DNA of 64,000 bases, from the NCBI GenBank assembly GCA_965644295.1, contig CBFFRP010000204.1, positions 1-64,000 on the forward strand. Direction: 5' to 3'. The translations under genes and the position numbers were made by a program. The DNA comes from Paraphysomonas bandaiensis. Taxonomy: Eukaryota; Protista; Chrysophyceae. The stretch's first letter is position 1, and each line of letters opens with the position of its first letter. This document shows, in pieces, positions 1 through 49,050 of this stretch. The notes beneath the pieces were generated by a model, which was not told the origin of the DNA, did not search any database, and worked only from the letters and a program-made list of their open reading frames with translations.

Positions 1-340
1 GTCTTGTGGAGAGTGCTTCCTCAGTACGGGTGCACACTGCCTGACAGTCTGTGTGGCTTCTTATGTGTTCGGGAATGCGTGTTGAGAGTATAAGCCCCAT
101 GGCTGTGCCTATGAGTTCATATGCGTATGAGTCCAAACCTGGCACATCACGAAAGGGTGTATCTAGTCGTAGTATTATGGTTGTACCATCTTCCCAGGCA
201 TTTTCTGGGGGTAAGTAGACGACCGCTGCACCTCCTCGGTGTGTCCATCGTGTTCGCGGATTGACATGAGTGAGGCGACGCGTGGAGAGCGCACTGGCTG
301 TGTATGATCCATCTGTGAAGATTGCCTTGAAAGTATCTGG
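1..340 (-). other. RNase H domain of the non-LTR polyprotein (partial)
   Basis: Manual translation gives KAIFTDGSY...GGAAVV...SYAYELIG...HTDCQAV, the D-E-D catalytic triad. Absent from the ORF track because the frame runs off the window. Confidence 0.88.
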
Positions 341-3300
341 TTGGACGCTATTAAGGCCGAGTTCTTGTTTTAGATTGGTCAGCATGTGTTCATCCTGTGG
401 TTCGGGGGGCTCAGGTTGCTGAAGGGTAAGGCCCAATTCCGTTCCCCATTCCCTGAGGCTGAGAACATAGTGGTGGTATTGGGGCTGTGGCTCTGTTGTC
501 TGAGTGAGTAGAAAATGTGCTGCTTGACCTGCTTCTCCCCCGAGGGTTATTGCGCGCTGTAGAGATCCCCATTTTTGCTCCTGCGCCGAGTCTGAGAAAC
601 GTTTCATACCTAATCCGTTGTGCTTGAGTGAGAGGTAGATCAGTTCCGTGGGGTATCCAGGGCCTAGACTGAGGGCCTTTCTGTAGAGGGTTGCGCAAGC
701 AGCGTCAATTTCTCTGTACCAGTGTAGCGGCCATGAAGCTTTGGTGGCTCTATAGAGCAAAGTCGGTATGATTTGGGTCTCGATAACCATGACTTTACAG
801 CCGGCTGAGGCCTGTTTAATCCCTAGGTGTGTGGTCACGACTTTCAGGTATTTTAGACACCAATCATGGGAGGCCTTGTCTGTGATTGTGAGAGGAAGGT
901 CTGCTCCGAGGTAATGTATCGACTCTAGTGATGTTTGGATAGGGACTGGGTGTGGACGCCACGACCAGTCGTAGAGAATGATGTAGCCAATGGGGTCGGA
1001 GGACTTGTTGGAATCTTGTAGGATCGGAAACACTGTGCAAACTACTTTGGGGATAGAGAGTTCCATTCCCGAAAGTACGCAGAACGCAGATATTTGTTGG
1101 GCAATGAGTTGGGCAGCGTGTATGGATTTAGCTATTGTGTTAAGATCATCCGCGAAGGAGATCTTTATTTCGCCGGTAGTCGGAGTCGTGAGTTGAATAG
1201 TTGGTAACGTTGGACTCGTTGTTGACAGTTCAATGTCCAGCCACGTGAGAAGGATGTCGTAGAGTGCCACCCAGGCGCATGTGGATTCTGTGCCCCTTGG
1301 GTGATACCCCTTTCGGCTTCGAAACCCAGACTGAATAGTGCAATGAAGTGGCCGTCTGCGGACAGGAGGTCAAGGAGAGAACGTGGCTCTATGTTGTTTG
1401 CCATGAATGGTGTCCAGGGAAATGTTAGACCGCCGGCATCTAAGTTGCCAAACCAGTCAACTACATCGTCCGGAACGCCCAGTCGTGCCCACGCGAGACG
1501 CATGAGGTTAGGCGCAATTGAGTCGAAGGCCTTCTTGAAGTCCCAGAGTGTACATATATGCTGGTCGCCTTTTCGTCTTGCTTCTTCTGCAGCCGCGAGT
1601 ACCCTTAGTATCGCTGTGTCCGTCCCGTTCCTCCAGCGATAACCATGCTGGGACGGATGCAAAACTTTCTGTTCCTCCCATACGGTAAGAATTCTATGAG
1701 TGATTATCCTTGTTAATATTTTCCTACTGACTTCAAGCAGACCAATCGGTCGGAGATTAGTGAGGGAGGATTCTCCTGGTTTCTTGAGAATGGGAGACAT
1801 TACCCTGTCTCTCCACCAAATGGGCACATGTTTATGTTTCCAGAGAGATCTGGTGAGGATGTAAGCCTCTCGCTGAACTACCGGTGGCCAGGATTTGACC
1901 ATGTTGGAGGAGACCATTGAGGGTCCAGGCGCGCGGTTGAAGGAGAGAGAGTGAAGTGTGCAGTAGAATTCATCCTGGGTGATGTCTTTTGCAAGAGTAG
2001 ATTTGAGTGTGGCTGCCATGGCCGGAGTGGTCTTGGTACAAAGGGCCCGTCGTAACCCCAGTTGCAGGGGAAGAGGGATTTTCGAGCGGGGGTGGAGTGG
2101 TTCCTGGCATGTCGCTGAGCCCGGATCAAGAAGGGATTTCCACCATGTAGGGTCATCCTGGAGCTGTTGTGCTACAGGGTCAAGTCCAGGAGGTTTGGCA
2201 TGATGTTCACGGAAGTGCGCATTAATGCCTTCATGAATGTCTTGCGGTGTTGTGAGGATGTGTCCGTCAGTTGTTTTCACCGTGGTAAGTCGGAGTGGTG
2301 TTTTGACCTTGAGACCAATTTTCTGAAGAATTGCTTGAAGTCTTTTCTGCTGTAGCAGTGCCTCCATCTGATTGGTGCGAGCCGTGAGTCTAGTCCGCAT
2401 TTCTGTCCTGGCTCTTCCATGAAGAAGTCCTCTCAGTCGCAAGGCAATTCGGAGAAGGTTTTTCTTGGTGGCTTGCTTTTCGTTCCAACCCAGGATTACT
2501 CGTGGGTCCGCGTTGCGATGGCTGCACCAGAAGTTGATGTCTGATATGCCTTTGATGTGACCCTGAGAACTCCTGAGATAGGAGTCCCATCGGATGAACC
2601 ATGCAGTGATGATTTCGTGGGTGGGGGTGGTTGCCGGGGCCCGCGCCATCCATGCCGTTTGTATCCGGCAGAATTGAACATCTTTTGGATAATCCGCAAA
2701 ACCATGATCATTCCTTCCTGTATTACTCTCATTTCCGGGGAAAAGCCATTCTTGAACTTTGAGCGTTTGCGCTGACAACGTTCGTGTAGTCGTGTGCTAT
2801 AAGTACATGCAGGACGCTTCGCTTCAAGCGAAGCCTGGAGGGTTATGTGATGGATGGCCGCTAGTCTGTTGGCTGCCACCTCAGGAGGGAGTATGGCAGA
2901 CGATCCGTTGTCTAAATGTGGTAGTTGTGCATGAAGTTGGAGGAGTCTTGCGGTGTATGCCTGTACTTCCTTGGAGTCCTTCGGGTTTACATTGAGACGG
3001 GGGGGGATTCGGAGGTGCGACTCAGGTGGTCGAGGGTCAAGATTGACTGGTACAGTGAAACCGACCCAGACCGGTCGATGATCGAAGGCTGCTGCGAGTA
3101 GTGAGGGGGAGTCAAGGCAGCCAGTGTCCGTAACAGACATGTTCGGAAGTAACGGCGTGTGTAGAATATGATCGATCCGCGATATTCCTTTGTCTAATCT
3201 GTGGAAGGTATGATATGTTTTCCTGGGTAGGAGAAGCTCATGGAGTGGTGCAGCCAGTTGGAGTTTGTCGGCAAGTGGTCGTATGTCTCTGCCTTTCGGA

Positions 3301-6300
3301 TTTGTCTCCATGGAGCCATTGAAGTCGCCGGCGACAATGACAGTATGGTCCTTGGCTCTGGCTTTAGTGACCCATTTCGTAAGGATGTTGCATAGGAGCT
3401 TGTAGGGGTCAGCAGTACAGATACCACGGGACGCTCTCCCTAGCTTGGTCAATTTGCTCCATAATGTGCAAGAGCCTGGCGTGGATGGCTTCGGGGGTAG
3501 ATAGACGCTTATTAGTACTAGGGTGTGCGCCACCGACGTTTTGAACTCTAGTCGGCTCACTAAACCAAGTCCCGTAAAGTCAGCCTTTGTGAAGGCGAGA
3601 CGGCGCTTCCAGTATTCGCTGATTATGACTACTGTACCCCCCATTAGTGGGTCTCTTGAAGTCAGTTTTGGCTGCTTGCTGAGGAAGAGGCATATTCTTG
3701 ATCCCTGGATTGCATCTTCTATGATACGTGTGAAGAAGTTGGCCTGAGTTTCTGTTAGACGGACATCCTGTAATAGGATCACGTCCAATTTTTGCCGCTT
3801 AAAGTGTCGGATGATAGCTTGGACTTTGCCTGTGTGAGATGCCGGATTGCCATTTGTGTTCCATGTGGAGAGTCGGAGTCCCATGGCTGCTCCCGAGGGA
3901 GCCTTGGGGATGCTGCTGGAGGTCTCTGTAGGAGTTCCACTCTTGTCTGCAAGGAGTCTGTCCCATACTGCTTTATTGGCACCGCCTATGTCGCTGTCGT
4001 ACGCAGCCCTGGCTTGGATTAATATCTCAAGTGGCCAGCGTTGATCACACCAGTAATGATGCCCGTAGTTGATGAGAAGTTCTTCATCCTTAGCAATGGG
4101 ACGTATTGTACGGACATAGAGGCGTTTATTTTTCGTGACAAACTTGACATTAGCCATGTTTGTGGCTAGGGGGTCATTAATATACCCAGCTTCGCATGTT
4201 ACACATTGTCGGACTTGGTCAAAAAGCCATCTATTGCGAAGGTACCAGTACTGTCTTGAACTATGTAATCAGAACGCCTTGCAGACTGACTCAGCTTTGT
4301 TAGTGGATAGCGTTTGCCTTTGTACTCAGCAATGATGACGTCTGCTGGGAATGTGTTCTTCGCATAAAGGGATAGTCCTTTGGCAGTGTTATCGGCGTAC
4401 GCAATGTAGAACTTTCTTGACCAGTCCTTGTCCCAGCTGGTGGTATCAAGTGCTGGAGTTGGTCTGATCGTTCGTGTGGTCGTGGATTGGTGTGAGTTGT
4501 GAAGGTTCGTTGGTTGGTCACTTTCATCGTAATTTACGACCTTTTTGGCTTTCCGGGTTGGCTGGCATCGACTTGTCAACGCAGTTTGGGCGTGTTTCAA
4601 CTGCATCTTCTTGTGCGATGGTAGTGCTCCAGGGGTTGAAGCCTGCAGAATCTGTCGATTTGTTCGTGCTAGCTTGGTGCTGCTGGACGAGGTTGTTCTG
4701 GTGCTGGTCGTCTTTGATGTCCTATTGTTGTTCGTGATTGAGTCCGCGGGAAGTGTAGGTGGAGCGATGGGGTCAGACGTTGAGAGTATACTGGTGGCCA
4801 AGGTGTTTTCAAGAGATAGTAGGGCGTTGTCTAGGGCAGTAGAAAGACCGGCAGGGTCTAAGAGGAAGTAGTGAGCATCTTGTAGTATGACATGGTAGTA
4901 ATTATCACGAATAGCGTTCCTAAGTTCCTCCACCTTCCATGCGATGTTATAAGCTACTTTGTCAGTAGGGATACCTACAATGCTGAGATAATTACCATTT
5001 TGCGCCCACGTCGTGCAGGGGTTGATAGTAGAGGCTAAAAGGTGGACCTCTCGCACTGAGAGCCAGTGAGTTATGTCGTCCTCCGTAGTGTATGTTGTTT
5101 TGGCAGGTATTAAAAGTGCGGCCTGTGCGTGATCCAACTTATGTCGTAGTGGCTGAAGTGTGTGATGGGCCATGCACTCCCGTTGCATTGTGTCGAACGC
5201 TTGGGTGCCTAATGTATTTATAAAAGATGCTAGCGTGTGACGGTCCTTGCGTTGTTTGAGGTCTAATTTCAGACAGGAGCGAGTGTGTCGCCTGCTTGAA
5301 GCAAGAATGTGCAGATGATAGAGTGTGCTGTATGCGCAGTATCCATCACTTGGGATATGTTGTTGTGTGCGAAGGGCTGAGGGTCTGAGGGTGAGGCGAT
5401 AGACTCTGCTCATGTCGCACATATGGAGCCTGAGTTGTCGACGGTCCGTGGGGTTCATCTGCCGTAGTAGTTGACGTCGAGCTCTCGGTGACAAGGAGAC
5501 TGCAATTACTTCCCTCTGTTCCTGTTGCTCTCTTTGCTCATGTAGCATAGATGGTACAGTTGACGGTTCAGAAGTCCAGATGATGTTGGTGCTCTGTCTG
5601 GAGGTCTGGTGTTGTAGAAAACAGGATAGCCGCTCCTGAGTTCGTGTTAGAGCGTGCATGATGGAGGTGGGGATATTTGTTGCATTTAGTATGTGAAACC
5701 CATGCTGGCTGCGTATGATGTCATGGGTTACCACAGTGTTGGTAGAAGCGTGCACTGTTAGTGCCTGTCTGGAGAATGGTGATAGCTGTGCCCAACCAGG
5801 CGCCAGGTGCGGTTGAACAGCGTCCCATAGTCTGTATGGTATGGAGAGAAGATCGAGTAGCAGTTGGAAATCCTCCGTGTCTAGATGTAGTCCTGTGTGT
5901 GGATTCGAGGATTCATATTGCATAAGTGTCTTACGGAGAGTGACAGTGGCTGTTGAGGGAATACCCTTTGTCAGGCAAAGGGTCCGCACATGCCTAGATA
6001 CAACATGAGTGGAGTCTGCCCAGGGTTTGTTGCCATTCGCGAGATGCTGGGCAACTAGTAGGGCGCTGTGCGTGGTGTCCAATTTGTGCTCTGGTAGCGT
6101 GAATGATATCATGAGATCATAGTTGTCCGTCCTGGAAGCCTTGGCTATGAATCCTTCCCATATGTCTAAACAGGCAGGGGATAGCATGTGTGCGTATATT
6201 TCTTTTAAAAGGTTTCCCTGTGGGGAGGCAGCAATGGTTTGGGTTTCATCATATCTAACCCAGTTGTTCAGCAGATCGGAGTGAAAGGGCGTGTGACCCC

Positions 6301-7681
6301 GGCCCTCTGTGTAGTGTAGGGGGTATGTGGCAATATCCTTGGGCAGTACATCCGGCCTGAGGTCAGGAGTGGTAGTGGAGAGTGAGGATGGGCCGTCTGG
6401 GGCTAATGCTGGAGTTCCCATGGTGTTCAGTTGAGTAAGGTTGGTGGTAGGTGGCTTCCGTTTGACTGGGAAATAGTCAAATAACGTTGCATACGGTGTG
6501 GTGGCATCCTTAGTGGGTAAGGGTAATGTGTGGGTGGATTTGCTGGGTCCGTCACCGCTGTTATCGGAGGAGAATTCCTTCCCCTGAAGGGCGTGGGAGG
6601 GATGGTTGATGGACCTGGCACGGTGGACTCCTTGCATTCCCTTGGAATGACATTGCAACACATTTTGGAGACGCATGATGACGAGGTCAGGAATTCTCTC
6701 GAGTAGCGCGTGTAGTTCCAACTCCACCGGGTATTTGGTGTCCAGGAAGAAGTGATCGTTGGAGCAAAACACATCATAAGATGGAAGGAATTGAGTTTGT
6801 GGAAGGAAGGAGGAATAGTGGGTGGACCAGTACGCCCAGTAAGGGAGAGGCGATAGTTTGTCTGGGGGTTTTCTAGGAGGAGGTAGAGTGTACTGTGTGT
6901 GTGTATGACACTGCAGTGGTGTTATGAGTGTGTTGGACAGTGAGAGAGAGCTGGTGATGTGTCCAACAGTACAGGTAGACAGGTACGTGGACATGGTGAT
7001 GTGTCCAACAGTACAGGTAGACAGGTACATGGACATGGTGATGTGTCCAACAGTACAGGTAGACAGGTACATGGACATGGTGATGTGTCCAACAGCAGTA
7101 GAGGTATACACGGGATGGTATACATCCTGTAGGACACAGTAGTACAGTAGTCGAGTATACCGTATGCGGAATACAGTGTCTATCCAATGAGATGGATGGG
7201 CTGTGGGGGTGATAGGTGAACAGGGTGAGGGGGTAGCCTGCTGGGTGGATGGACCACAGACAAACCATGTTGGGTTGGGTTGAGTGGGCGGCAGAAGGCA
7301 GCCCTGTTGCACAGTTGAGAGGGATCGAGAGTATTCAGTGATTGCATAGGGGGTCCATGGGGGTCGTTTTCGTGAGCCTGCTCGCACGAGCCATGTTCTG
7401 AGAGGTTGTAGCCGTAGAAAGCGATGGGTGAGACGAAGTTGTCTGCTGAGGGGATAGCACGTAGGTGCGGTCAGCGCTGCATTGGTGCAGGCACGTGGTT
7501 TAACTGAAGTAGTTGAGTAGGGTGAAGGTTGCAAGGCCAGGCAGGGGGGCTTGGAGCGTGTACAACATGGTGTGACAGGTAATTTGTCGGAAGCGTGGTG
7601 GTCAACAAAATGCAGCAGTAAGGGAGTGTAAAAGGCCCTGGGCACACTGATGTGACTCAGCCACAGTCTCAATAGAGACAT
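1..7681 (-). CDS. Retrotransposon polyprotein OTU-SET-APE-RT-RNaseH (>2,550 aa after repairing 3 frameshifts; partial at 3' end)
   Basis: ORFs 4199-7681, 2496-4157 and 1165-2778, plus an open frame from ~1293 to base 1 (translated by hand, no stops), join by three -1 shifts at A5 4221-4225, G-runs ~2623-2640 and C4 1293-1296. Confidence 0.85.
860..1800 (-). other. Reverse transcriptase domain (non-LTR type)
   Basis: LRPIGLLEVSRKIL, QHGYR, WDFKKAFDSI, RGITQG, ISFADDL (1142-1162), HYLG; downstream LIYLSLKHNGLGM motif at ~610-640. Confidence 0.95.
3060..3880 (-). other. Apurinic/apyrimidinic-like (EEP) endonuclease domain
   Basis: LSTWNTNG, DVILLQD, ISVYLPP, VIVAGDFNG, SRIDHIL, FDHRPV motifs. 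Confidence 0.93.
4050..4415 (-). other. SET domain (lysine methyltransferase), split by a -1 frameshift
   Basis: KGLSLYAKNTFPADVIIAEYKG...YIV...AIDG / CEAGYINDP...NVKF...LYVRTIRPIAKDEELLINYGHHYW. Confidence 0.88.
4860..5365 (-). other. OTU-like cysteine protease/deubiquitinase domain
   Basis: HIPSDGYCAY (Asp/Cys loop), WLSVREVHLLA (W-x4-E-x3-LA) and ILQDAHYF (His) in OTU order and spacing. Confidence 0.72.
6952..7096. repeat. 42-bp tandem repeat, ~3.4 copies, in frame in the retroelement ORF
   Basis: Unit TGGTGATGTGTCCAACAGTACAGGTAGACAGGTAC(A/G)TGGACA; encodes VGHITMSMYLSTCT on the minus strand. Confidence 0.95.
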
Positions 7682-7892
7682 TGGGCTTGGAGCTGGTTAA
7701 TAGAGTGAAACTTTATGTTGGACTGTATTTGCCATCGTAGGGCAGAGAATTCTCTGTCCTTTTCTAACTAAATCAAATCATATATTAGTAGCAAGCTCAT
7801 CTTCTCATTATCATTATACTATGCCCTAGATTTCAGTACATAGTACATATATCCAGGAAATTATTGATGTTATATTTCAACAATATAATTAT

Positions 7893-8110
7893 CAGGGCTG
7901 CGTAACCATTTATTGTCAACTAATTGGCGCAGGTTGTCAATTAAAATTGCAATTATTACTTGTTGTCCCAATTTCAATTAATTGCAATTAAACTATTAAA
8001 CTACATACGTATATAGCTATATATTAGCTGCCAACTGCCAGTATAGCTCACTCAATTGTCGATTCATCCCAGAGGCGACATTTCACGCGTAAAAGTATGA
8101 GTAACTCTAA
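7893..8110. mobile_element. hAT terminal relic (same family as 53764-54869)
   Basis: Starts CAGGGCTGCGTA and aligns by eye with 53764-53945, including CCAGAGGCGAC...CGTAAAA. Confidence 0.7.
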
Positions 8111-12490: not shown

Positions 12491-12994
12491 TAGTCTATTG
12501 GAATTTCAGAGCTTATTTTGCTTTCTAATATAAATCTTTGTTTTTGTAGTTACGCGAATTAGTAATTCTTAAGATTAGCATCTCCAGGGCACTCATCAAC
12601 CCAACCAATGGTTAGAAACCTGAATCCTAACCCTAACTAACCGAACACGAACACCGAACTCAAACCTTAACAAATAATTCCATCAATACATTGTGTATGC
12701 AGTACTTTTAAAAACTGCTGAGTTCTTTCAAACATTTCTAAGTAACAATAGTCAATACCATCATACATAAGATACTTCTTCAAAATGACAACTATACAAT
12801 CCCATAAAACTCTAGGGTCTATAAACAAAATCTAAGACACACCATCAGAAATAATCATCCAATTTAGGATCTATTTCACATATCGCATTCAGAACTCTAA
12901 ATTAGATTTGTAGCATGTACAATAGATATGCACTAATCAGGAGACAGTTAAAACCATTGTTGGCCACTCCATCTAGTCATGCGTTTCATCCCAT

Positions 12995-14327
12995 CTATTT
13001 AACAGTTGAATCATAGCTACTTTTACTCTCACTGTCCTGATCTTCATCCGAATCGCTGAATAGCTTTTCAGGTATACTTGGGTCACGCCACGACAGCACA
13101 CCACAAAGCGCATGCATTACTGACTTATGGTGAGAATTATCTCGCTCGGAACCAAGCAAGCACAGGTCCCATACTCGTACAGAGTTGTCATGAGAAGCAC
13201 TGAGAATGAAGGGTCGCGGATTCAGAGTGCCACAAACACTCTTTACAGAAGTGCTGTGTCCGCAGAGATCAAAGGCAAGCTCGCCAGTTTCAATATTATA
13301 CACCCGGATGCGGCCATCGCTAAGCCCCACACATAGTCCCACTGAAGGGGTGTTGAACGTGCCGACAGAGCATACTTGACAGTCAGGATCAAGTATGGTG
13401 TACATAAGGTTTCCAGATATAAGATCCGATACATGAACAGAGTGATCAAAGCTTCCTGAGGCCACTAGTGGTCGATCACGTCGTCCAACGCATACGGAAA
13501 ACACAGGGCCGCTATGGCGCTGCAGTCGACGGCACACAACAAGTGTTTCCAGGTTCCACACTACCACACTCCCATCCATACATCCAGCCAGAATTACTGC
13601 CGGCCGTGTTTCATCCGCAAACGTATCCATTGCACGGTACACACATAGACAAAGCACATCGCACTCGCAATCATCCAGACTCGTAATCAGCTCACCCGTT
13701 TCCAGCAACCAGACGAAGACTTTAGACTTAGAGGCGGAGACTACCACAGGCTTCATCCCTTCGTGCACACACACAGCCCGCACAGGGCCTTCATGATGGT
13801 GTAAGCCGAGCTCGTGAATTTGCATTCCAGTTTGAAGTTCCCATACCTAATCAGACAAGCCGTTACTGTGTAATTGTCGATCATACAATCCCATTTGCCT
13901 TGACTAAACCGTCATGAGACCCGGACACGACCACCGGCAGTGTGAGCGACTCATCCATAGGCTGAGATATAGCAACGGAGTAAACAACAGACGTGTGACC
14001 ATCAATTGTAAAGAGCTTCTTGCCTAGCTCAATGTCGAATATTACCAATGAAGGTCCGCTGCTGCCAGACACTGCGACCATCCTCATCCTCAAGTCATCG
14101 TCGTATTGAGTTCGCAGTAAAATTGGAGTATAATCTGCACAAACACTAACAGAATTAATCCAAGATCTGTGATAGGACAATGTGCGGCAAGGGAGGTGGT
14201 AACGGTCAGGAATAGTTACTCGAGTTATTTTAGCCAAGCGAGATTTGTGGACAAGTTTTTGGACATCCGTAACAACTTGCTCCCTTGAAAAATCCGCATG
14301 TTTGCGGCGACGCTGAGCACGCATCAT
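12995..14327 (-). CDS. WD40-repeat protein (2 exons)
   Basis: SGSHDG, GCMDGSVVVWN, SGSFDHSV, SASHDNSVRVWD; intron 13847-13898 restores DGLVK|VWEL. Confidence 0.9.
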
Positions 14328-14636
14328 TAGAGCGAGCGAATGATGCTACAATATTATGATGAGAGGGTCGCATCACGTGAACATAACGCACTCTCAGAGA
14401 TGAGCCGCAGTAGGAATATGTGTATACTGTAAGGTATACCTGGTATACCTGTGCAGCGTGCAGCAGTATGATGATGAAATACTCTGTACAGCAGCTGTAT
14501 CTGGGGATTATACGTATAGCATGGTATACAGTATCATATACTGTACCATGTAGCTACGTGCCTACATCAGCTCTCTTCTCCTTCACCGCACCCGACACAG
14601 ACACTCCTACTTCTATTGGTGTCGCTGGTGTCAGCT

Positions 14637-26869: not shown

Positions 26870-27154
26870 ATTGGCTTGGGACTTTTGTATGATTATATGA
26901 TATTATTTAACGTGTTTTATATATATGAATTTTTACGTATATTATTATAGTTAATAGTTATATATTATGGTAATTATAATGCTTGTATCGCTAATTTTAT
27001 TTTGTAAATAATGAACAAATATAATGTTTTGAGCAGTAGAAACAAGCTACAAACATGTTAGAAAGAATCTAGACACATAAAATACAATTTTTTAGGTAAT
27101 AGCTTATTTGGCCTGGTTTTGACCATTTGACCTGGTCATCGCCTTCCTCCGACT

Positions 27155-29170
27155 TTAGCACAACCATCACATAGGCCACCCGGTAAAGAAGTAGCATTCA
27201 TCTCCGACTTCGTTAACTTAATACCCGTTACTAATTTTGACTGTACAGCTTTCTGTATGAGTCCAATTGAAGAATGTGCCAATCTCTTATGTGCTAGGGT
27301 TGCGAGTGGGCCTGAAGCAGTTGAAGCAAGGTGGGATTCGTCAATAGGAGTACCGAGGTCTGTTAACGGAATTTCATATAGGCCTCCAACTCTCTTACCC
27401 TTTGATAGCAGTATTTCATCTTTATATATCTCAACTGATTGGTTTCCGAACAAGATTTTATACCCTAGGTCATCTAATTGGCTGATGGACACGAGTGTCC
27501 TTGAAGCATGGTCCACGTGCTTGCACTTGGGGATAATACCAAGTCTTCCATGTCCTGAAGAGGTCATAGTTGATCCTGACTTAGCTGTTTGAATGTCGGT
27601 GAGGCATTCCTCATAATTGGTGATGTATCCGGCTTCAGGTGTGATGGAGACTGTGCAGCCAGAATCAAGGGTCCCCATTCCGGCTTCTTGATCAAAAACG
27701 AAGTTCGTTTCGTCGTTTGTTGGATATCCGACTCCTCCGAAGTCTCGTCCTTTCTGTTGTAGTGGACCACTGTCTTCATAATCTGCAAACTGGTCGGATT
27801 CGTCGTTTTCAGTGCTCTGGTGGGTCTGGAATCTAACTTTTTTGAATTTCCTACTGGTTGATTTGTTTCCAGAGGAATTCTTCATCTGTTGGATTCTTTC
27901 CCATGAGTGTTTGCATTCTGAAGCGATGTGTCCTTTTCCATCGCATCGGAAACACTTAATGTCCTTGTCAGCTCTCTTGTCATGTTTCGGTTTATTGGAA
28001 CGGTTTCTGAAAGATGTCCCCTTTTTGCGCTTGGAATTCACTTTATTTCGGGAAAATGGGGGTTTTGAGGCTGCAAGCTGAATACTGTCGGTTTTTGTTT
28101 CTTCGTTGCTTGACAAGAGCATTCCAACAGACGAGCTTCCTAATCCGCGTAGTCTGCGTATGAGTGTTTTGTAGTCATCGATAGGGTGCATCTGCAGGTT
28201 GATCGCCAGTTCACGATACGTCATATTTTCTTTGGATACCAGGCCTTGTCGAATGCGTGATATGAGATCTTGGTCACTTATCCGATGACCATAATTAATC
28301 AGCTTGTTTCGGAGCTTTTCGACAGCGTCAAGAAAGTTGATTATCGACTGACCTTTTTTGATTTTTATGCTCTGAAACTGGCCAATCAGATCGGTGATTA
28401 CATCGTTAGTCGTTTTTTCTTTGAAGTGGTTGAGCAAGTCCGTCCAGGCGGTTTTACCGTCTCCATCGGGGACGTTCTCCAAAATCCCCTCAGCCTCTTC
28501 ATTCTGACCAATGATAGAGCTTGCAATGACTGACCATAGGTAGTTATTACCTTCATCATAATATCGTTTCGCATCCTGATACTGTTCGAGTCGATACTGG
28601 TAGTCCTCGTCATCTGAGTTTTCTCCTGCTTCAGGCTCAATTGGGTGATCGTTCTGTAGAGTATAAACGATCTTAGGCTTGCTGATAGAACCATGCACGG
28701 CACTTCTTCTGCCACCTGGAGAAGTTCTTCGCATCGAATTTTGGCATTGAGTCCTTTCGCTTGTCGGTTGTCGAATCCGAGTCGGTTGAGTCGTAACTTG
28801 TAACTTTAACTGACATCTCGCTACCAAATAAAGAATTGATCTTTATAATAGTAAAACAATGTTGTGATTATTAGAGTGTAAGTAATGAACACGATAGAGT
28901 GAAAATTATGAATAACAATATAGAACGTACTATCATGCACAACGGAATAGTTAGAAGTGTAACTGATAATGACGACGTTATGATGACGATCACGTATCTT
29001 CGACAGATACTCTCTCTAATTCAGTTCATGGTATATTTCATTGAACATTATAACTCACAGATACAATCATGTGTTAAGCTGAATCCTAATACTATGTGTT
29101 GCCACAGTTATTCAATGGATGTACATTATTCGTATTGAGTATGTATGGATAGTTATCCACATTCCAAACA
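27155..29170 (-). mobile_element. 5' half of a Ty1/Copia element (LTR ~28827-29170, PBS, gag, protease, GAG-pre-integrase), truncated at the TIR element
   Basis: PBS TGGTAGCGAG 28817-28826 directly followed by ATG; DGKTAW, zinc knuckle CFRCDGKGHIASEC, LDSGC, LVSISQL, HKRLAH...CDGCAK. Confidence 0.93.
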
Positions 29171-40008: not shown

Positions 40009-40429
40009 AGTACTGTATGATATATATACATATGGAGATCACTGGATGAACGTAATAATATTGATCGTGGTGTTATTCTATGTGCTCTTGTTGTGAAGAG
40101 TGAAAAGAGAAAGTGAAATATGCTGCTTTAGGTAATAGGCGAAAGACGAACATTTTTATGTCTCTACTAATTAGCTAGGCTGTAGAAAATATGAAACATG
40201 TTATTCTCGCACGCAGAATATAGATACTGGTAACACGGTATATACGTGGTATACACCTGGTCACCTGGTATACCATACTGTAAACTGGAGTATTGACATA
40301 GCATACACAGAAGCGTAGCTGGAGGCAGAATACCTGAGGGGATCATAACCACCTGTAAAGAACCAGGCTTACGTAAAATGTAAAATTAATAGGCAATTAA
40401 TTGCTGACACGTGTCGACTCCCTCAATAG

Positions 40430-40870
40430 CTCAACAGTGGTCGGACACGAACCGTTTCGTGGTGTTCTTGGGGATAAGTACCGAAGATATCTATCCGGGA
40501 AACTAATGCGAGCCTTATATTATATAATCAGCAGATATTGTTCTGCCCTCCCATGGTACAATGTACAATGGACACTAATATAAGTGTCACTTGTGTTGAC
40601 GTCTTTGGGCTTGACGAATAATCAGGCATCCGGGGTATTGGGCTACCTGCTGAAGTCAAGCACCCGGGCTATTCACCGATTTAAGGTAGCAGGTGTCAGG
40701 TGTATCAACATTTTGCTTGCTCATTGCGTTTGCTTTGAGTGACAGAGAAAAAGTAGTTGCACCTTGGTGCTTGCGGTGACGCACAAGCAGCTTTCGTAGC
40801 ATTAAGTAGTAGGATATTAGAGTTAAGCACTAAATTAGTTCTGACTCTCCAACGCATGTTGCTAATAATA
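40430..40870. repeat. Dispersed ~450-bp unclassified repeat, copy 1
   Basis: Shares long blocks (GGGGATAAGTACCGAAGATATC; TTGCGGTGACGCACAAGCAGCTTTCGTAGC) with 48015-48535 and 48660-49050. Confidence 0.85.
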
Positions 40871-40984
40871 ATAGATTTACTACTGGTGTCCAACAACAAT
40901 AATTGCAATTATTAGCCAAGTATCCAATTGTTGATTATTATTGGCTTAGCTATTAATTGGCTATTATTGTAATAACATTCTGAA

Positions 40985-42722: not shown

Positions 42723-45700
42723 CTAAAGTTCATCATCATGAATGGTATCGAAACCGTCATCCTTTATGTCCTCATTAAATTCACTCTCTGTTGCATTGCC
42801 ATCATTGACAGGATCCATGTTCTCATTCTGATCACCTTGTTCGACAGTAGTGGTATTAGTTTCATTGAGAGAAGCAGTGACGTTAACCTATCACAAACTG
42901 TTATCGTATGGATAGCGAAGATGCAAGCACTTAATCACAATTATCTACAGCACCTTTGGAGGAACCGGTTTCGGCTTCTTCAGCAACTTCTCGAATTGCA
43001 GAGTCAATGGTTTCATCTGAGCAGTTACATCCGCCGAACTGAAAGCTGGAGTTTCGTGTGATGATAATTCAAGCTGGGCTTTTTCATTATCGTCCAGCCA
43101 CGTCTCAACTTTTCCAACGGTATTCAGTAATTTTTCTTTTTCCTCTTCAGTAACATGTGGTAGACTCTCAGACCACTCCGCTACTACCTTTCTCACAGTT
43201 GCAAGCTGTGTGCGAGCCTTGCGAACAGCCTCTGGTCTAGCTTTGTGCTCCTTAAACCGCTAGAAATACGGGTTAGCCTAACGAAGAAACGACCTGATAA
43301 ACATACGGATTACCTTGAACACTGCGTCTGCTTTAACTTTAATAGCGTTCTGTCTCGCTTTGTATACAGAAACGTCTTGATCACGGCCATCACCATAGAG
43401 CCAATCCTCAACATCATCGCACATAGCGATAATATCTTCTCGTTGCTCAGCAGTAGAAACAGCACCAAGCTTGTCATCTCCATCTTCTTCTCGAAAGCGT
43501 CCACGGATCTTATACACAAACGCCTCGAGGTCGTTCAAAGCAGCGGCCTTGGCAAGTCTTAGCTCATCGGCTGCATTCAAGTCTTCTAAACGTCTTCTGG
43601 CATCGGCTAAGAGCTTTGATGACCACATTGCCGGACGAAGAGCGCCAGTGTTCGCATCAATGGTGAGGACTTGACGAAGAGTGTTATCCTTTTTCGATTT
43701 TTTCGACTTTTTGTTCTTGGTTGACTTGTCATCTGAACTCTCTTTTGGCGTCGGTTCTTCGACTTTAGTATCATGTGCCGCCTCATCGAGAGGGACACTT
43801 TCAGCAGAAGACTCGTTGCTCTGGGTTTCAGCAACACTTTCCTCTTCTGTGGTGGATGCGCTTTCTTCCGTCTCTGCCGGTAACTCCAAAGTGGCTTCTG
43901 CTTTGGACAAATACACCATTCCACTTGCATCCAGAGTAAAGCTTAAATGAACCTTTGGTGTCCCTAAGCCACGCTCCGATGCCATTTTTGCAAAATTTGA
44001 AACCCCAGTGACATTGTACAAGGCAATCATGTGATCAGTGCCCTCCGGTAATGGATTGCTGTCATCACGATCATACTCAACTTTGCAAAGAATGTCCTGG
44101 TCATGGTGAAACGCAACAGTCTTCGTTTTTGAAGGAACTGCTGACCCTGCAGGATACAGTGCCGTGTGTTTAGCCCATGCCTCATCATTAGCCGCATTAT
44201 CGGCGGTATTCGTTTTACCAACAAGCCATCCAAACACACCACCATCAGAGGCGGTTGGAAGTGACTCCAAATTGATAGACACACCGAACTTCGAAATGTC
44301 TGACATACCAATCTGAATATTACGAATTAGCATTCACAAGAATACGAACGATAAACTATGCACATCTTAACAAACTGTTCATAAAACAACAATAGATTGT
44401 AGTTCTTACCTTTCGAACCCTAAAGGCGGTGCTGATATTCGCTGCTCTGAATGCTGCACCCAAAGCCATAGCTTCATCCCCGTTGAGATGGGCACCAAGC
44501 TCAAGATCACCAGCTCTGAAGTACGCCTCAAGGTTTTGCTTTACCTAATGAAAGGCCACGAGTTAGCTTTTGAGCATTCAAATCAAACAACAGCATTTCT
44601 ACCTTAGGCATGCGAACTCCACCACCAATTAATTCAACCGCATTAATATCCTTTAAGGTCATTCCGGCCATCGCAAGCGCTTCGTCAATAGGGTGCGTGA
44701 CGCGATCAAAAAGATTACCACATGCTTCCTCAAACTCTGACCGGGTAATCTGCGACACCATTACAAGCATAGAATATAATACACTATTTTAAGCTCACTT
44801 TAGTATGTAAATCCACATCTGCGTGCAGCTGCTCCACTTTGTAAGGAAATTCATTATTTGCTGACAACACTTCTCTGATCTTCATCGCCTCCATACGCAA
44901 GCGAGTCATAGGTCTCACATGGTCACGAATATCCTGTCCCTTCCCTGACTTCTTTTTATGCCAATTAGCATTGAATCGGTCAGCAAGAATTTCCGCAATA
45001 ACCACATCAAAATTAACGCCCCCTAACTGGGTATCCCATGCCTTACCAATAACTTGAAATTGACCAACTGTCTTGTTCTTACCGCCTTCCTTTGTCTCAT
45101 ATGAACTGTATGTTACAATTGATACCTATAAAATATATTAAGTATTACATCAGCGACAATTTGGCACGATAACATACTTGAACCATACTGGCACCCATGT
45201 TGTAAAATAAAACCGTGTGAGAATCATCAAATACTCTGTCTATTCCGAAGTGCAAAGCTGCAGCAGTATTTTCCTCCATCAGCGACAGAACATTAAGATC
45301 GGCGATATCAGCTGCTGCATACATTGCAGCTCTCTCGTGCTGAGTGAAGCTGGAAGGCACTGTTAGCACGCAATCCTTAACATTTTTCCCGCCATATTGC
45401 TTAGTCATTTCTTTGGCGTGCATCATCATCATAGCCAGTAGTTCCTCTGGGGTGAAGTATGACTCTCCAAACTTGATGCTGAGACAGAAATAGAGTTATG
45501 CAAACGCAAAAAAAACTAAACTACACAAATACCTTGTTAACCCCGTGGTTTCGTTTGCATAAACAACGTACGGGAAGTACTGCTTCTGTAAGGATGCTAC
45601 AAGTGGGCTGTCATGGCTTTGACCCAATATTCGATGAAACTTGGTAAAAGTTAATTCCGGCTTTCGTGCCATTAACGCGTAGGAGTCTGCACCAAAGGAG

Positions 45701-45945
45701 CGCTCCCCATTATAAAAAGTAATGGAATTGGGTGTCCGGCGTTTCGATTGAGAATTTGTCACTGCACATATGTACCGTTAGTCTCAGAATGAATCTATCA
45801 GATCAATATATTAACGACCTATGTCAAATTTTCCAGGAGACACCAATCCCACTTTCATATTATCACTTCCGAAATCAATGCCAATTACGTTGGCTGTTGC
45901 AGTAGCAACAAGAAGAAGATGAGGAAGAATGCGAAGTGCCATCAT
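42723..45945 (-). CDS. HYOU1: ER Hsp70-family chaperone HYOU1/GRP170, multi-exon
   Basis: Signal peptide + IGIDFGS, TNSQSKRRTP, ENTAAAL, FYNMGAS, ELIGGGVRMPK, HLNGDEAMALGAAF, C-terminal HDDEL. Confidence 0.95.
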
Positions 45946-46595
45946 TTCACTGCAGTCAAAGTGCTAGTGTCAGAGTGTTCGATATCACCGCAATCAATTC
46001 TATGGACCCTACACAATATTAGGTGTGTAAAGGAATAATGTATGCAGGTGTGTTGCACAATGGTTGAAACTGAGGTGTGTTCTATGTGTGCATAAATAGT
46101 GCCTAAATTCCGCAGCCACACATCCTGTGCCTATATTTGCTTAGCAGTCATCTTTACGTAAAACTATATAAGAAGTCACACGTAAAAAAACAAATTCTTT
46201 CGAAATATATTTCTGGAATTTTACACGTGTCACCAACATACGGTTTATAGTGTTAACAGAAAACGCGGTTACAGGTCAATTTTTTGACAGAAAGCTACAG
46301 GATTGAAAAACTACACATTTCGAAATATTACATTGCTAAATCTGGGAATTATTTTATAGGAAGATATACAGAAAAACTGAACCTGTAACTTAAAATACAG
46401 AGATGATGTTTTTTGCACCACTGCTTTTTTTGGTTCAGCAGTATACCCTGTAGTTCCGATATGTATACGTATGATCAAAATGATACCAGTGCAGCAGTAC
46501 ATAACTGTATAACTGTATGGAGATTTTTATAGTGGGATTCGATTCACTCAACAACTCAACAACATTAAATAGAAGAAAGGGGTTGAGTTTACACG

Positions 46596-47400
46596 ATGCT
46601 CCGTTGTACGAGTGCAAAGTGCTTACGTTTTTCTATTGTTTTTCTCTCATATATAGTGAGAGTGTGTGATGCGTCAACGGTTTCCCTGGATTGGGGACTT
46701 GGAGTAGGGGACCAAGGCACAACCGTAGTGTCTACTGGAGATTTTGTTCAGTGGGTCTGGGTGGACAGTGGAATCCCACACAGCATTTTCGCAGTAAATG
46801 GGGATTTTTCAAACTCAGATGTGAGCAGTACGAAAGGTTTCACGCATACTGTCCAGTTCCACACGGTTGGTACATATAACTATATATGTGCTGTTCATGG
46901 AACAGCAATGAAGGGAATCATTTCAGTGGTCGCGAGCACATCATCCGCTTCACCCAGCATGTCCCCGACATTTTTTCCAACTGTGAGTCCGACTAAGAAG
47001 CCAACGCGCAGCCCCACTGTTAGCCCAACCATGATGCCGACTTCACATGACTCACAATTCCCATCATCGCGGCCAACCTTTTCTCCAACTGCGATGCCTA
47101 CTAGGATTCCCACCCGGCTACCAACGAAATTACCTAGTGTATCACCAACTTTCTCACCTACTTTGAAACCTACAACTTTGCCAACTAAGGTACCGACAAA
47201 TGCTCCAATATCGACGCCAACAAAGGCGCCAACGAAAGAACCTACGAAGACTCCGACATCAGTGAAGCCCACTTTGTCGCCTACTCCAATCCCAGAGAAA
47301 TTGTGTAAATGCAACAGTGTTCATCGCTCTTATCGCTAATATGTCGGTAGCTTATGCGACGACATCTGTATTTACTTATTTATGAAAAGCATTCGTATGT
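46596..47400 (+). CDS. Secreted cupredoxin (type-1 Cu) domain + PT-repeat mucin-like stalk; 3' end uncertain
   Basis: Signal peptide; PH...YICAVHGTAMKG (H, C, H, M ligands); many PT/SPT repeats. Confidence 0.8.
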
Positions 47401-48014
47401 TGTGGTCATGCATCTTCTCTTCCTTCTATATATCAATGGGTCGAAGTGCTGATTCAATAAATGATACTGCATGTGCGGTCCTCACGCTGTACGTTTTCTG
47501 ATTTATGTCCCTGCATTGTGGAGTTAATAATTATACTTATTTCTTAAATATGTGAAAGGATGTCAAGTTTATGTCTTGCTTTTGTGGAATAAAGAATTAC
47601 AGATGCTCAACAATAGATGAAAATTGGACATTGTTTTATGCTTATTTTGTGATTGGTAGAACCAAGTGATTAGTTAAGTCAATAATGAACATAATACTAA
47701 ACACCCATAGTTTAGTAAAAAATTGACAAAAACACAAAATCGATAGCGTGAAGTGGTTATTCCTTAAAAAAATGTACTATTCAATCTTCAAGAGTGCGTA
47801 AATAGAACAAAAGCATAACAATCAGGCTTGCGTAACAGTTAAGAAATTTTCAATTTATTGGCAATAATTGCCAATCATTGGATTGTGAATTAAATTAATT
47901 GCTTTTAGAAGTGATAATTTCAATTATTTTTATTGGTAAATGTTGCCAACTAATTACCAATTAATCGCAAGTAATTGACTGACTTAATTATATATACCAT
48001 CTTCTCTCAGCAAA

Positions 48015-49050
48015 GTCCGGACTCGCACCGCTTCGTGGTGTTCTTCGGTTCTTGGGGATAAGTACCGAAGATATCTCCGGGAAACTAACGTAGGCCGTAT
48101 ATTATATATAGTCAGCAGGTATTGTTCTGCACACCCATGGTACAATGTACAATGGACACTAATATAAGTGTCACTTGTGTTGACGTCTTTGGGCTTGACC
48201 AATAAACAGGCATCCGGGATATAGGGCTGCCTTCTGAAGTCAAGCATCCGAGAATGAGAATGAGAGAGAATGAGACCACCTCAAGGGCAACGGGGGTATT
48301 GGGCTGCCTACTGCCTCTACAAACAGTCGGGCTAATTCACCTAAGGTTAAGGACAGAGGTCAAAAGTGGTTGCACCTTCTTGGTGCTCTTGCGGTGACGC
48401 ACAAGCAGCTTTCGTAGCGTTAAGTAGTAGGATATTAGAGCTAAGCACTATTTAGTTAAATGTTTTGCTACATTAATTAGTTAAATTCTAAACCTTATAC
48501 GCCTATTATTGCTAATAATAAGACATTCACTACTGATCATAGAGGTACAAACTCATTATCTACTAGCATAGAGGCTTGGATGTAGGTGCACAATCACTTT
48601 ATTATTATTATTTATTTTTCTAGTCGTAATTGTACCTATCTACAATATACTCCCTCAACAAAGTCGGACTTGCACTTTTTCGTAGTAAGTACTGAAAAGA
48701 TTTCTTCGGGAAACAAACCTGAGTCACATATTATATAGTCAGCAGATAACATTTGTGTAGACGAACAAACAGGCAACCAGGAATGTGCCCACCTGAAGGG
48801 CATCTGGGGTATTGGGCTACCTTCTGAAGTCAAGCATCCGGGCTGTCCACCTACTGAAGTTAGCAGATGTCAGGTGTATCAACATTTTGCTTGCTCACTG
48901 CGTTTGCTTTTTGAGTGATAGAGAAAAAGTAGTTGCACCTTGGTGCTTGCGGTGACGCACAAGCAGCTTTTGTAGCGTTAAGTAGTAGGATATTAGAGTT
49001 AAGCACTGACTCTTAAACGCCTATTGCTAGAAATAAGACACTCACTACTA
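48015..49050. repeat. Two adjacent diverged copies of the ~450-bp unclassified repeat
   Basis: Aligns by eye with 40430-40870. Confidence 0.85.

Follow-up and report, generated by a model that had tools for sequence, protein, structure and literature searches.

The left end of the 64,000-nt stretch of Paraphysomonas bandaiensis DNA analysed here (the window) harbors four open stretches on the minus strand, located at 7696-4202 (1165 codons), 4268-2499 (590 codons), 2796-1168 (543 codons) and 1369-2 (456 codons, running off the window). Together, the pieces amount to approximately 2,560 codons, in line with the sequence-only reading, in which the four frames were joined to one ORF of more than 2,550 amino acids. 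The first ATG of this giant ORF is found at 7679-7681 (minus strand; 4199-7681 in the ORF listing), approximately 70 nt from the 5' end of the element. Collinearity with an intact relative of 3175 amino acids (P0013, residues 451-2705 of which are aligned), a 5' end shared with an independent copy (L007) and the base composition delimit a 5'-complete LINE copy of the W family at positions 1-7750 (minus strand). The 5' end had previously been placed at 7760, whereas the comparison with L007 shifts it to 7750. The G+C content of the element is approximately 0.50 compared to 0.37-0.46 in the flanks, and its sense strand is rich in C and A. The copy is truncated by the left window edge, beyond which the last approximately 470 codons and the 3' UTR are located. 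Taken as a whole, positions 1-7750 very probably represent a copy of a large non-LTR retrotransposon from a marine protist, in which SET and OTU-like domains are encoded in a single giant ORF.

The ORF of the window copy is disrupted by three frame breaks, all given here for the minus strand. At 4221-4222, two extra T are present in a T run when compared to a 99%-identical sibling (L006). At 2635-2640, one base is missing in a G/C run in comparison to L006 and a second sibling (L008), and at 1291-1293 the sequence is one base short compared to L008, a break that is also absent from the sibling protein P0137. In L006 (99.0% identical), the first two breaks are absent and SET, APE and the N-terminal part of the reverse transcriptase are encoded in one frame of 1072 codons; L008/P0137 (98% identical) is free of the second and third break. 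These near-identical siblings (98-99%) come from other samples. The window copy was either recently inactivated or is blemished by assembly indels. That it is in reality intact and that all three breaks are assembly errors is possible, if doubtful: each break is a length change of one or two bases adjoining a homopolymer run (T5, G/C runs, A/G runs), none of the four pieces contains an in-frame stop and the breaks are missing in siblings of 98-99% identity, but lesions are also borne by L006 (a stop codon) and L008 (a 28-nt deletion). Since these siblings carry lesions of their own, decayed copies are normal in this LINE family.

The APE-type endonuclease is encoded at 3153-3866 (minus strand; Pfam PF03372 Exo_endo_phos, E 1.5e-10) and the reverse transcriptase at 905-1785 (minus strand), with a match to Pfam RVT_1 at 1468-1785 (E 9e-10) and the end part of the domain at 905-1186. 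In a PDB search, the counterpart of the RT region in P0013 aligned with human LINE-1 ORF2p (E 1.2e-7). Outside the family, the closest LINE proteins found share 22-28% identity with the RT. The first three-fifths of an RNase H-like region are located at 2-319 (minus strand), recognised by motifs only (FTDGS, YELIG and HTDCQAV), with the remainder off the window. To the FTDGS, YELxG and TDC motifs of the window, relatives add SHPE and IADAVA further downstream. Pfam, PDB-profile, hhalign and fold tests for RNase H were all blank. After this region, the ORF of the family ends with a zinc knuckle (C-x2-C-x8-H-x-C-x2-C) and a basic tail.

A minimal SET domain (Pfam PF00856), split by a frame break in the window copy, is encoded upstream of APE at 4062-4420 (minus strand). 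Its C-terminal half (4062-4235) reaches 29.0 bits in Pfam (gathering score 22.4), and the N-terminal half (approximately 4223-4420) lies in the previous frame. As the sequence-only reading had stated, the C-terminal half shares one uninterrupted frame with APE (ORF 2496-4157). Full-length SET matches were obtained with Pfam for P0013 and for the related transcript P0011. Among PDB entries, the SET domain of KMT2D (E 5.5e-8) and vSET of the virus PBCV-1 (E 6e-4) were matched, as were KMT2C/MLL and EZH2, and a weak match to Pfam PRDM2_PR was found (E 0.0008-0.0012). Like PBCV-1 vSET (PDB 1n3j and others), the domain is a minimal SET of approximately 120-130 residues encoded by a genetic parasite, with neither pre-SET nor post-SET region; unlike this free-standing viral protein, it forms part of a LINE polyprotein and carries Asp for the motif His. 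According to an alignment of three families, all families carry Asp at the position of the canonical His in the NH(S/C) cofactor motif, and catalysis by SET is therefore not assured. It is conceivable, albeit unlikely, that SET has been kept as a binding module, serving as a histone-tail or protein tether for integration or RNP assembly, rather than as an active methyltransferase. This would fit the exchanged His, the first glycine-rich motif, which is shrunk to KGLSLYA, the absence of pre- and post-SET regions and the weak PRDM2_PR match, which points toward the PR-domain branch of SET, where activity is low or missing in many members. On the other side, the motif Asn and the Tyr of EELLxNY are conserved in the same three-family alignment, and vSET, a viral SET of 119 amino acids, works as an active enzyme without flanking regions.

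Further upstream, a block at 4856-5371 (minus strand) is a candidate OTU-like cysteine protease with a Cys box (IPSDGYCAYSTL), a His box (QDAHYF) and weak fold matches. The block is covered by the relatives L001 and L002 as well. No Pfam match was obtained even at E 10, nor any PDB sequence or profile match. A structural model of the block (AF2) had a pLDDT of 54. When this model was compared by Foldseek to the PDB (350,542 chains), approximately 40 of the 50 best matches were OTU enzymes from several subfamilies (best E 0.13), and in BFVD (best E 0.029) OTU proteins recurred among the named matches; all matches have E > 0.01 and a TM of approximately 0.3. The fold comparison and the motifs suggest that the block is probably an OTU-type cysteine protease. 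It is rather unlikely to be a conserved domain of a different kind, such as one with a structural role or for nucleic-acid binding, in which Cys and His are incidental. The empty Pfam and PDB searches, the low-confidence model, the low-scoring fold matches and the replacement of Asp by Asn in the catalytic box of L004 speak for such a domain; against it, (D/N)GxCx(F/Y) at a predicted helix start and AH(Y/F) on a predicted strand form the OTU signature, both boxes, (D/N)GYCAY and AH(Y/F), are invariant over four families, and OTU enzymes prevail among the best PDB fold matches. A conserved Gly-Gly site, which would hint at ubiquitin-like self-processing, was not found in the linkers.

The N-terminal part of the ORF comprises a conserved region at 5420-6838 (minus strand), defined by alignment with P0013, L004, P0002 and P0005 and containing the blocks SSDNSGDGP, DYFPVK, ALCLTxG and DFQxxLDLLSIPYRLW. 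It showed no match in a Pfam search and no recognisable domain; between families, its pN is 0.31-0.33 and its pS 0.66-0.70. Within the 5' part of the ORF, which evolves fast, a 42-nt tandem repeat of 3.4 units (6952-7095, minus strand; TRF) encodes the repeated peptide VGHITMSMYLSTCT. The sibling L007 is one unit shorter.

The same architecture is found in several relatives. P0013, located on an 11.3-kb contig, is 70% identical to the window element and shows the same domain order in one intact ORF, with SET at residues 1254-1358 (full model), APE at 1419-1656 and RVT_1 at 2113-2405. In L003/P0006 (70% identity), SET, APE and RT are encoded within one frame, and the collinearity of L004 (34-55% identity) extends over the N-terminal region, OTU, SET, APE and RT. 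The arrangement is thus kept in at least three families that are 34-70% identical at the protein level, with elements of approximately 9.5-11 kb and giant ORFs of approximately 3,000-3,175 codons. Purifying selection acts on the OTU-like and SET parts, whose constraint nearly reaches that of APE and RT. In the comparison of the W and P families, pN amounts to 0.21 for OTU, 0.19 for SET, 0.16 for APE and 0.15 for RT, compared to 0.41 for a linker, at a pS of 0.64-0.79; the dN/dS of 0.15 for SET, like the other values of this kind, is rough because synonymous sites are saturated. A one-off chimera, in which a LINE adjoins or has captured host SET and protease genes and the long frame is accidental, is highly improbable: there is a single such copy in the window with frame breaks between its parts, but the order recurs in the intact 3175-codon ORF, in the 70% and 34-55% families and in the 98-99% siblings, and both additional domains show purifying selection between families. 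Of the OTU-SET-APE-RT-RNase H polyprotein proposed before, the order and the non-chimeric nature thus stand and both SET and OTU-like parts recur in the copies sought, including constraint on either; Pfam returned the expected SET, Exo_endo_phos and RVT_1 models but neither OTU nor RNase H, the former being weakly supported and the latter recognised by its motifs.

In families with 70% protein identity, an approximately 100-nt 3' tail is conserved at about 96% identity. Two further matches to it were found in the window (0 expected), within three short elements. The short non-autonomous element A (40417-40885, plus strand) has this tail of the LINE, and elements B1 (47999-48535, plus strand) and B2 (48649-49049, plus strand; flanks ATCTACAATAT and ATCTGCAATAAT) belong to the same family as A. 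One short element shows a target-site duplication (10/11), and in two of the three no clear duplication was detected. The target-site duplication of the LINE itself is unreadable, because its 3' end lies outside the window. In folding predictions, the tail did not exceed shuffled sequence in stability (z -1.26). With respect to expression, the MMETSP transcript P0011 is 98% identical to P0013, and the culture sample that yielded L001 also yielded a host transcript with 97% identity to the window. Expression and strong purifying selection would also suit a domesticated, no longer mobile host gene derived from a LINE, but such an origin is scarcely credible in view of several near-identical copies with independent lesions, a 5' end common to two copies, an internally deleted derivative retaining both ends, a 3' tail shared with short dispersed elements and a composition foreign to the flanks.

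Neither a published account nor a catalogue entry of a LINE combining SET and OTU was found in the literature outside Repbase. LINEs of the APE type in which RNase H follows RT are known from the I group (I, Ingi, Nimb, LOA, R1, Tad1, Loner, Outcast), plant L1 and Proto1 (PMC4640811). The window family resembles these LINEs in the order APE, RT, RNase H-like region and Cys/His knuckle, in the lack of LTRs and in a specific 3' tail instead of poly(A) that is shared by partner short elements. It differs from them in having one ORF of approximately 3,000 codons instead of ORF1 and ORF2, and approximately 1,300 extra N-terminal codons including SET and the OTU-like block. Dualen/RandI LINEs encode a Josephin-related protease (PMC9977147) and NeSL/Utopia-1_TSP LINEs an Ulp1-like one (PMC4640811). 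Common to these and the window family is a papain-fold protease for ubiquitin-like modifiers (here the OTU-like candidate) in cis with RT in a single polyprotein; in the window family, however, the protease is OTU-like and located upstream of APE, SET is present, and a restriction-like endonuclease was not recognised. OTU, SET and APE are all carried by Helentrons: an OTU-like cysteine protease, SET (in proto-Helentron-Pi) and APE are reported for Helentrons and the Phytophthora proto-Helentron (PMC4067079; PMC6431247). The likeness concerns the kinds of accessory module combined in one transposon type. Helentrons are rolling-circle DNA transposons with Rep/helicase, in which OTU and SET are separate ORFs, whereas the modules of the window family are fused to RT, and a Pfam search detected no Rep/helicase in the window element or P0013. 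Writers or readers of chromatin marks kept by selection in mobile elements are likewise represented by DNMT-carrying retrotransposons of dinoflagellates and charophytes (PMC5890265), MBD-carrying Copia (PMC6673714) and chromodomain Gypsy; unlike in the window family, the carriers are LTR or DIRS-type elements and the module carried is a DNA methyltransferase or a reader. Grau-Bove et al. counted SET-TE gene-model fusions, which they name solely as a class, using SETMAR as their check; a LINE family combining SET and OTU is not described there (10.1101/2021.11.30.470311).

The element would move by target-primed reverse transcription, with APE setting the nick from which RT is primed. Recognition by the RT might rely on the conserved approximately 100-nt 3' tail instead of poly(A); this would account for the short non-coding elements with the same tail in the window. 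As a deubiquitinase-type protease, the OTU-like domain might cut the polyprotein or remove ubiquitin-like marks from proteins of the element or the host. SET might benefit the element by methylating a lysine of a histone or of some other protein in chromatin or the RNP, and its effect could lie in anti-silencing, self-limitation or target choice.

The LINE copy at window 1-7750 (minus strand) is read in four open stretches between 7696 and 2, located in sequence at 7696-4202 (1165 codons), 4268-2499 (590 codons), 2796-1168 (543 codons) and 1369-2 (456 codons, continuing past the left window edge). The four pieces were searched individually, with P0013, a relative whose ORF is naturally intact, as reference for the whole protein. 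A SET domain (Pfam PF00856) was detected at 4062-4235 (29.0 bits, curated cut-off 22.4), corresponding to the C-terminal half of the domain, followed by an Exo_endo_phos (APE) endonuclease domain (PF03372; 3153-3866, E 1.5e-10) and a reverse transcriptase (RVT_1; 1468-1785, E 9e-10), the C-terminal end of which lies at 905-1186. The domain coordinates and the total of about 2,550 codons proposed in the sequence-only reading agree with the ORF listing and with Pfam, and the APE does share a single unbroken frame with the C-terminal half of SET, as had been stated there. The 5' end of the element was placed at window 7750 because L007, an independent copy with an internal deletion (96% identity), begins to match the window copy at that base; the first ATG is located approximately 70 nt downstream. 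The four pieces align end to end and collinearly with residues 451-2705 of P0013, so that nothing but the 3' UTR and the last ~470 codons is missing from the window copy. The LINE block has a G+C content of about 50%, with a C- and A-rich sense strand, compared to 37-46% in the flanks. A 42-nt tandem repeat (3.4 units, window 6952-7095) is found within the 5' part of the ORF, with one unit fewer in L007.

The contig is not human. The genes neighbouring the LINE are ordinary eukaryotic ones, for a glyoxalase II, a WD40 protein, a JmjC/glycosyltransferase protein and a RING-FHA protein; a copia gag is also present. The best matches of the glyoxalase II do not exceed 52% identity, the named ones being from stramenopiles and apicomplexans (44-49%). 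The WD40 gene (12554-14348, minus strand), only a part of which is covered by the ORF 12995-13825, is 97.1% identical to a culture transcript (L009); the alignment contains 52 gap positions, which, if they form a single block, may represent a short intron. The ORF at 27136-28827 (minus strand), containing a copia-type gag, a zinc knuckle and a pre-integrase domain, is an LTR retrotransposon, either a remnant or a copy. Directly upstream of the LINE 5' end, a dispersed AT-rich repeat unrelated to the LINE is found (7909-8105, 72-76% identical to 45576-45747 and 46586-46663). No Rfam match was obtained anywhere in the window.

The order of an OTU-like block (window 4856-5371) and SET ahead of APE and RT, as interpreted from the window copy by the sequence-only reading, is supported by its relatives. 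With the SET-APE piece as query, P0006 (70% identity; a single protein with SET and APE) and P0007 (48% identity; APE and RT) were retrieved. The cluster of P0006 includes P0013, an uninterrupted protein of 3175 residues encoded on an 11.3-kb metagenome contig (L005), in which SET (1254-1358, covering the whole Pfam model), APE (1419-1656) and RVT_1 (2113-2405) follow each other. In a more distant relative, L004, protein identity is only 34-55%, but collinearity extends from the N-terminal region to the RT, with the OTU-like block, SET and APE in between; two further diverged versions of the OTU-like block are found in L001 and L002. The architecture is thus a trait of a family and not a chimera confined to the window copy. 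Several further copies of the LINE were found outside the window. The N-terminal and OTU part gave only five short matches among 1.84 billion representatives, and scans of JGI metagenome contigs with OTU peptide patterns or with the exact 3' tail yielded no further relatives. L004 (PBSN01000010.1 of GCA_002726235.1), bearing SET, APE and RT, is filed in a 'Nitrospiraceae bacterium' genome bin; it is evidently a eukaryotic LINE of the same group as the window element, contaminating the bin. On L005, an ORF of 349 codons (568-1617) is located directly upstream of the 3175-codon ORF and shares its strand composition. Neither a Pfam match nor a counterpart in the window copy was found for this short ORF, which may be either an ORF1 of the P0013 family or flanking sequence.

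The frame breaks of the window copy could be compared with two siblings. L006 (99.0% identical to window 5211-1376) does not contain the two extra T of window 4221-4222 and possesses the base missing near window 2640; with neither of these breaks present, SET, APE and the start of the RT thus lie in one frame of 1072 codons. In L008 (98.2% identical to window 3474-1), no base is missing near 2640 or at 1292, and the product of L008, P0137, spans from the RT to the natural stop. Both siblings carry lesions of their own, a stop codon between the OTU-like block and SET in L006 and a 28-nt deletion in L008. All three breaks are private to the window copy. Homopolymer runs adjoin each of them, and they may be real mutations or assembly indels.

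Codon comparison of the window family with the P0013 family was carried out region by region, at synonymous sites that are near saturation (pS 0.64-0.79). The lowest pN values were obtained for the RT (0.15), the APE (0.16) and the RNase H-like region (0.17), closely followed by SET (0.19; dN/dS 0.15) and the OTU-like block (0.21). Values for the conserved N-terminal region (0.31-0.33) and the OTU-SET linker (0.41) were higher. The OTU-like block and SET are thus kept nearly as strictly as the transposition enzymes.

Over the full Pfam model, SET scored 34.4 and 36.0 bits (cut-off 22.4) in P0013 and in its transcript relative P0011, respectively. Matches in the PDB include KMT2D (E 5.5e-8), KMT2C, MLL, EZH2, SETD7 and PR domains, as well as the 119-residue vSET of chlorovirus PBCV-1 (E 6e-4). 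The domain is minimal, pre-SET and post-SET regions being absent. Three motifs, KGLSLYA, GYINDPL and EELLINYG, are found in the three aligned families. Compared to the cofactor motif NH(S/C)xxPN, GYINDPL retains the Asn, but Asp occupies the position of the canonical His in every family; EELLINYG retains the catalytic Tyr of the ELxxxY motif. Judged from these residues, methyltransferase activity is plausible, albeit not assured.

For the OTU-like block, the Pfam profile PF02338 gave no match at E values up to 10 with the versions of the window, P0013, L004, P0003 and L001, and searches against PDB sequences (phmmer and a family profile) were blank except for a chance lectin-repeat match. The motifs and the predicted fold point to an OTU. 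Two boxes, (D/N)GYCAY and AH(Y/F), in the order Cys to His, are invariant in the window family, P0013 and L004; of the other family members, P0003 has the His box and L001 the Cys box. Both correspond to the Cys box (D-G-x-C-x-aromatic) and His box (H-aromatic) of OTU cysteine proteases. In the predicted model, which is poor (pLDDT 54), a helix begins at the Cys, and the His lies in a strand of a C-terminal sheet. About 40 of the best 50 fold matches among 350,542 PDB chains are OTU enzymes from several subfamilies (best E 0.13, TM 0.29-0.35), comprising the nairovirus vOTU, otubains, OTUD2, yeast Otu1 and OTUs of Wolbachia and Legionella. Fold matches in BFVD (best E 0.029) include, among the named ones, OTUs of giant viruses, botybirnaviruses, nairoviruses and tenuiviruses. 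The earlier OTU-like assignment is therefore backed by motifs and top fold matches but not by profile searches, and the block is quite likely an OTU-fold protease. Outside the APE, RT and RNase H-like bodies, linkers included, the families share no conserved Gly-Gly, and therefore no particular self-cleavage site is indicated.

In P0013, the RT matches RVT_1 at E 1.2e-14, and its best PDB matches are to LINE-1 ORF2p (E 1.2e-7), as expected of the LINE-type RT of APE-type non-LTR retrotransposons. The APE is located N-terminal to the RT in a single frame in L006, P0006 and P0013, which is the arrangement of APE-type LINEs. Outside the family, a word-indexed search returned three unnamed LINE ORF2-like proteins (22-28% identity) and otherwise family members only, and the RT is far from everything else found. 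The RNase H-like region (window 2-319) contains the motifs FTDGS, YELIG and HTDCQAV, to which the relatives add SHPE and IADAVA; the order and spacing of FTDGS, YELxG, TDC, SHPE and IADAVA fit the D-E-D-H-D pattern of RNase H. The region had no Pfam match at E 10 and no PDB profile match, hhalign against an RNase H-bearing LINE protein gave a probability of 0.14, and a fold search (model pLDDT 45) gave matches without signal. RNase H is thus a putative identification at the level of motifs. The C-terminus of the relatives consists of a C-x2-C-x8-H-x-C-x2-C knuckle followed by a basic proline-rich tail.

Three short non-coding elements of 400-540 nt are located on the plus strand of the window at 40417-40885, ~47999-48535 and 48649-49049, each with approximately 100 nt of the LINE 3' tail as known from the 3' UTR of L007 and L005. 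The LINE 3' tail recurs twice in the window with at most two mismatches, with none expected, and the three elements stop at the same base, ...CACTACT(G). The window LINE copy's own 3' end falls outside the window. The element at 48649-49049 is flanked by ATCTACAATAT and ATCTGCAATAAT, a target-site duplication with 10 of 11 positions identical and the single clear case. No tRNA-derived head was found in the short elements, which are probably non-autonomous partners of the LINE. Identity over the final ~95 nt of 3' UTR that were compared (L007 1447-1528, L005 11210-11291) is about 96%, the proteins of these families being about 70% identical. This conservation suggests a cis-acting RNA element, although the predicted fold of the tail is no more stable than that of shuffled sequence. 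We infer that the LINE RT may recognise its own 3' tail, with the non-autonomous partners alongside. L007 (1745 nt), P0004 and P0010 represent a deletion derivative, in which the first 1.2 kb continue in frame into the last ~30 codons, followed by the 3' UTR; both element ends are retained. With regard to expression, the culture transcript P0011 shares 98% identity with P0013, and L001 is an element transcript 88.5% identical to L005, from a sample which also yields a host transcript matching the window at 97.1%.

Helentrons and the Phytophthora proto-Helentron, which are rolling-circle DNA transposons, contain OTU-like proteases, a SET domain and an APE endonuclease (PMC4067079, PMC6431247); the window pieces and the 3175-aa P0013 have no Pfam match to Rep (HUH) or helicase and possess an RT where Helentrons and Helitrons have these two. 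Dualen/RandI elements combine APE with a restriction-like endonuclease and a Josephin-related cysteine protease (the latter described in PMC9977147). Neither a second endonuclease nor Josephin was matched by Pfam in the window pieces or P0013 segments, and the C-terminal part shows a Cys/His knuckle only, although a degenerate restriction-like endonuclease may escape inspection by eye. Of the other features, RNase H downstream of the RT is known from the I group, plant L1, Proto1 and Dualen, and a Ulp1-like cysteine protease from NeSL and one Utopia (PMC4640811). The window element is classified as a non-LTR retrotransposon with a set of accessory domains not described for LINEs. In the full-text literature (Repbase and its reports lay outside the search), no LINE with SET or OTU was found. 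SET-TE fusions were counted as a class across 172 genomes in one survey (10.1101/2021.11.30.470311), in which no such LINE is described. Other transposons provide precedents for the capture of chromatin and protease modules, and among retrotransposons some bear DNA methyltransferases (PMC5890265) and others a methyl-CpG binding domain (PMC6673714).

The functional ideas for the SET and OTU-like domains are ones that we infer. It seems unlikely, taken jointly with the donor step mentioned below, that a marine-protist LINE lineage sets chromatin state by an active histone-lysine methyltransferase and a deubiquitinase of its own; the state concerned would be that of its insertions or source copies, by which silencing would be escaped or controlled. 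In a further step of the same reading, Helentrons may have received their OTU, SET and APE modules from such a LINE, or the latter may be a sister to these modules, and the co-occurrence of the three bears on the source of these modules. On the practical side, a contig of a public 'Nitrospiraceae' bin is shown to be a eukaryotic LINE.

LINEs are usually described with what is needed for copying only, i.e. a chaperone, an endonuclease, an RT and sometimes an RNase H. Here, a domain of the chromatin-writer type and a probable protease of the ubiquitin-system type were kept under selection while the members diverged to 34% protein identity. With this family, lysine methylation of the histone type would join the few epigenetic functions carried by retrotransposons (DNA methyltransferases, methyl-CpG binding domains and chromodomains), and the family provides a compact system, in a gene-dense genome, for asking how a transposon manipulates host silencing.
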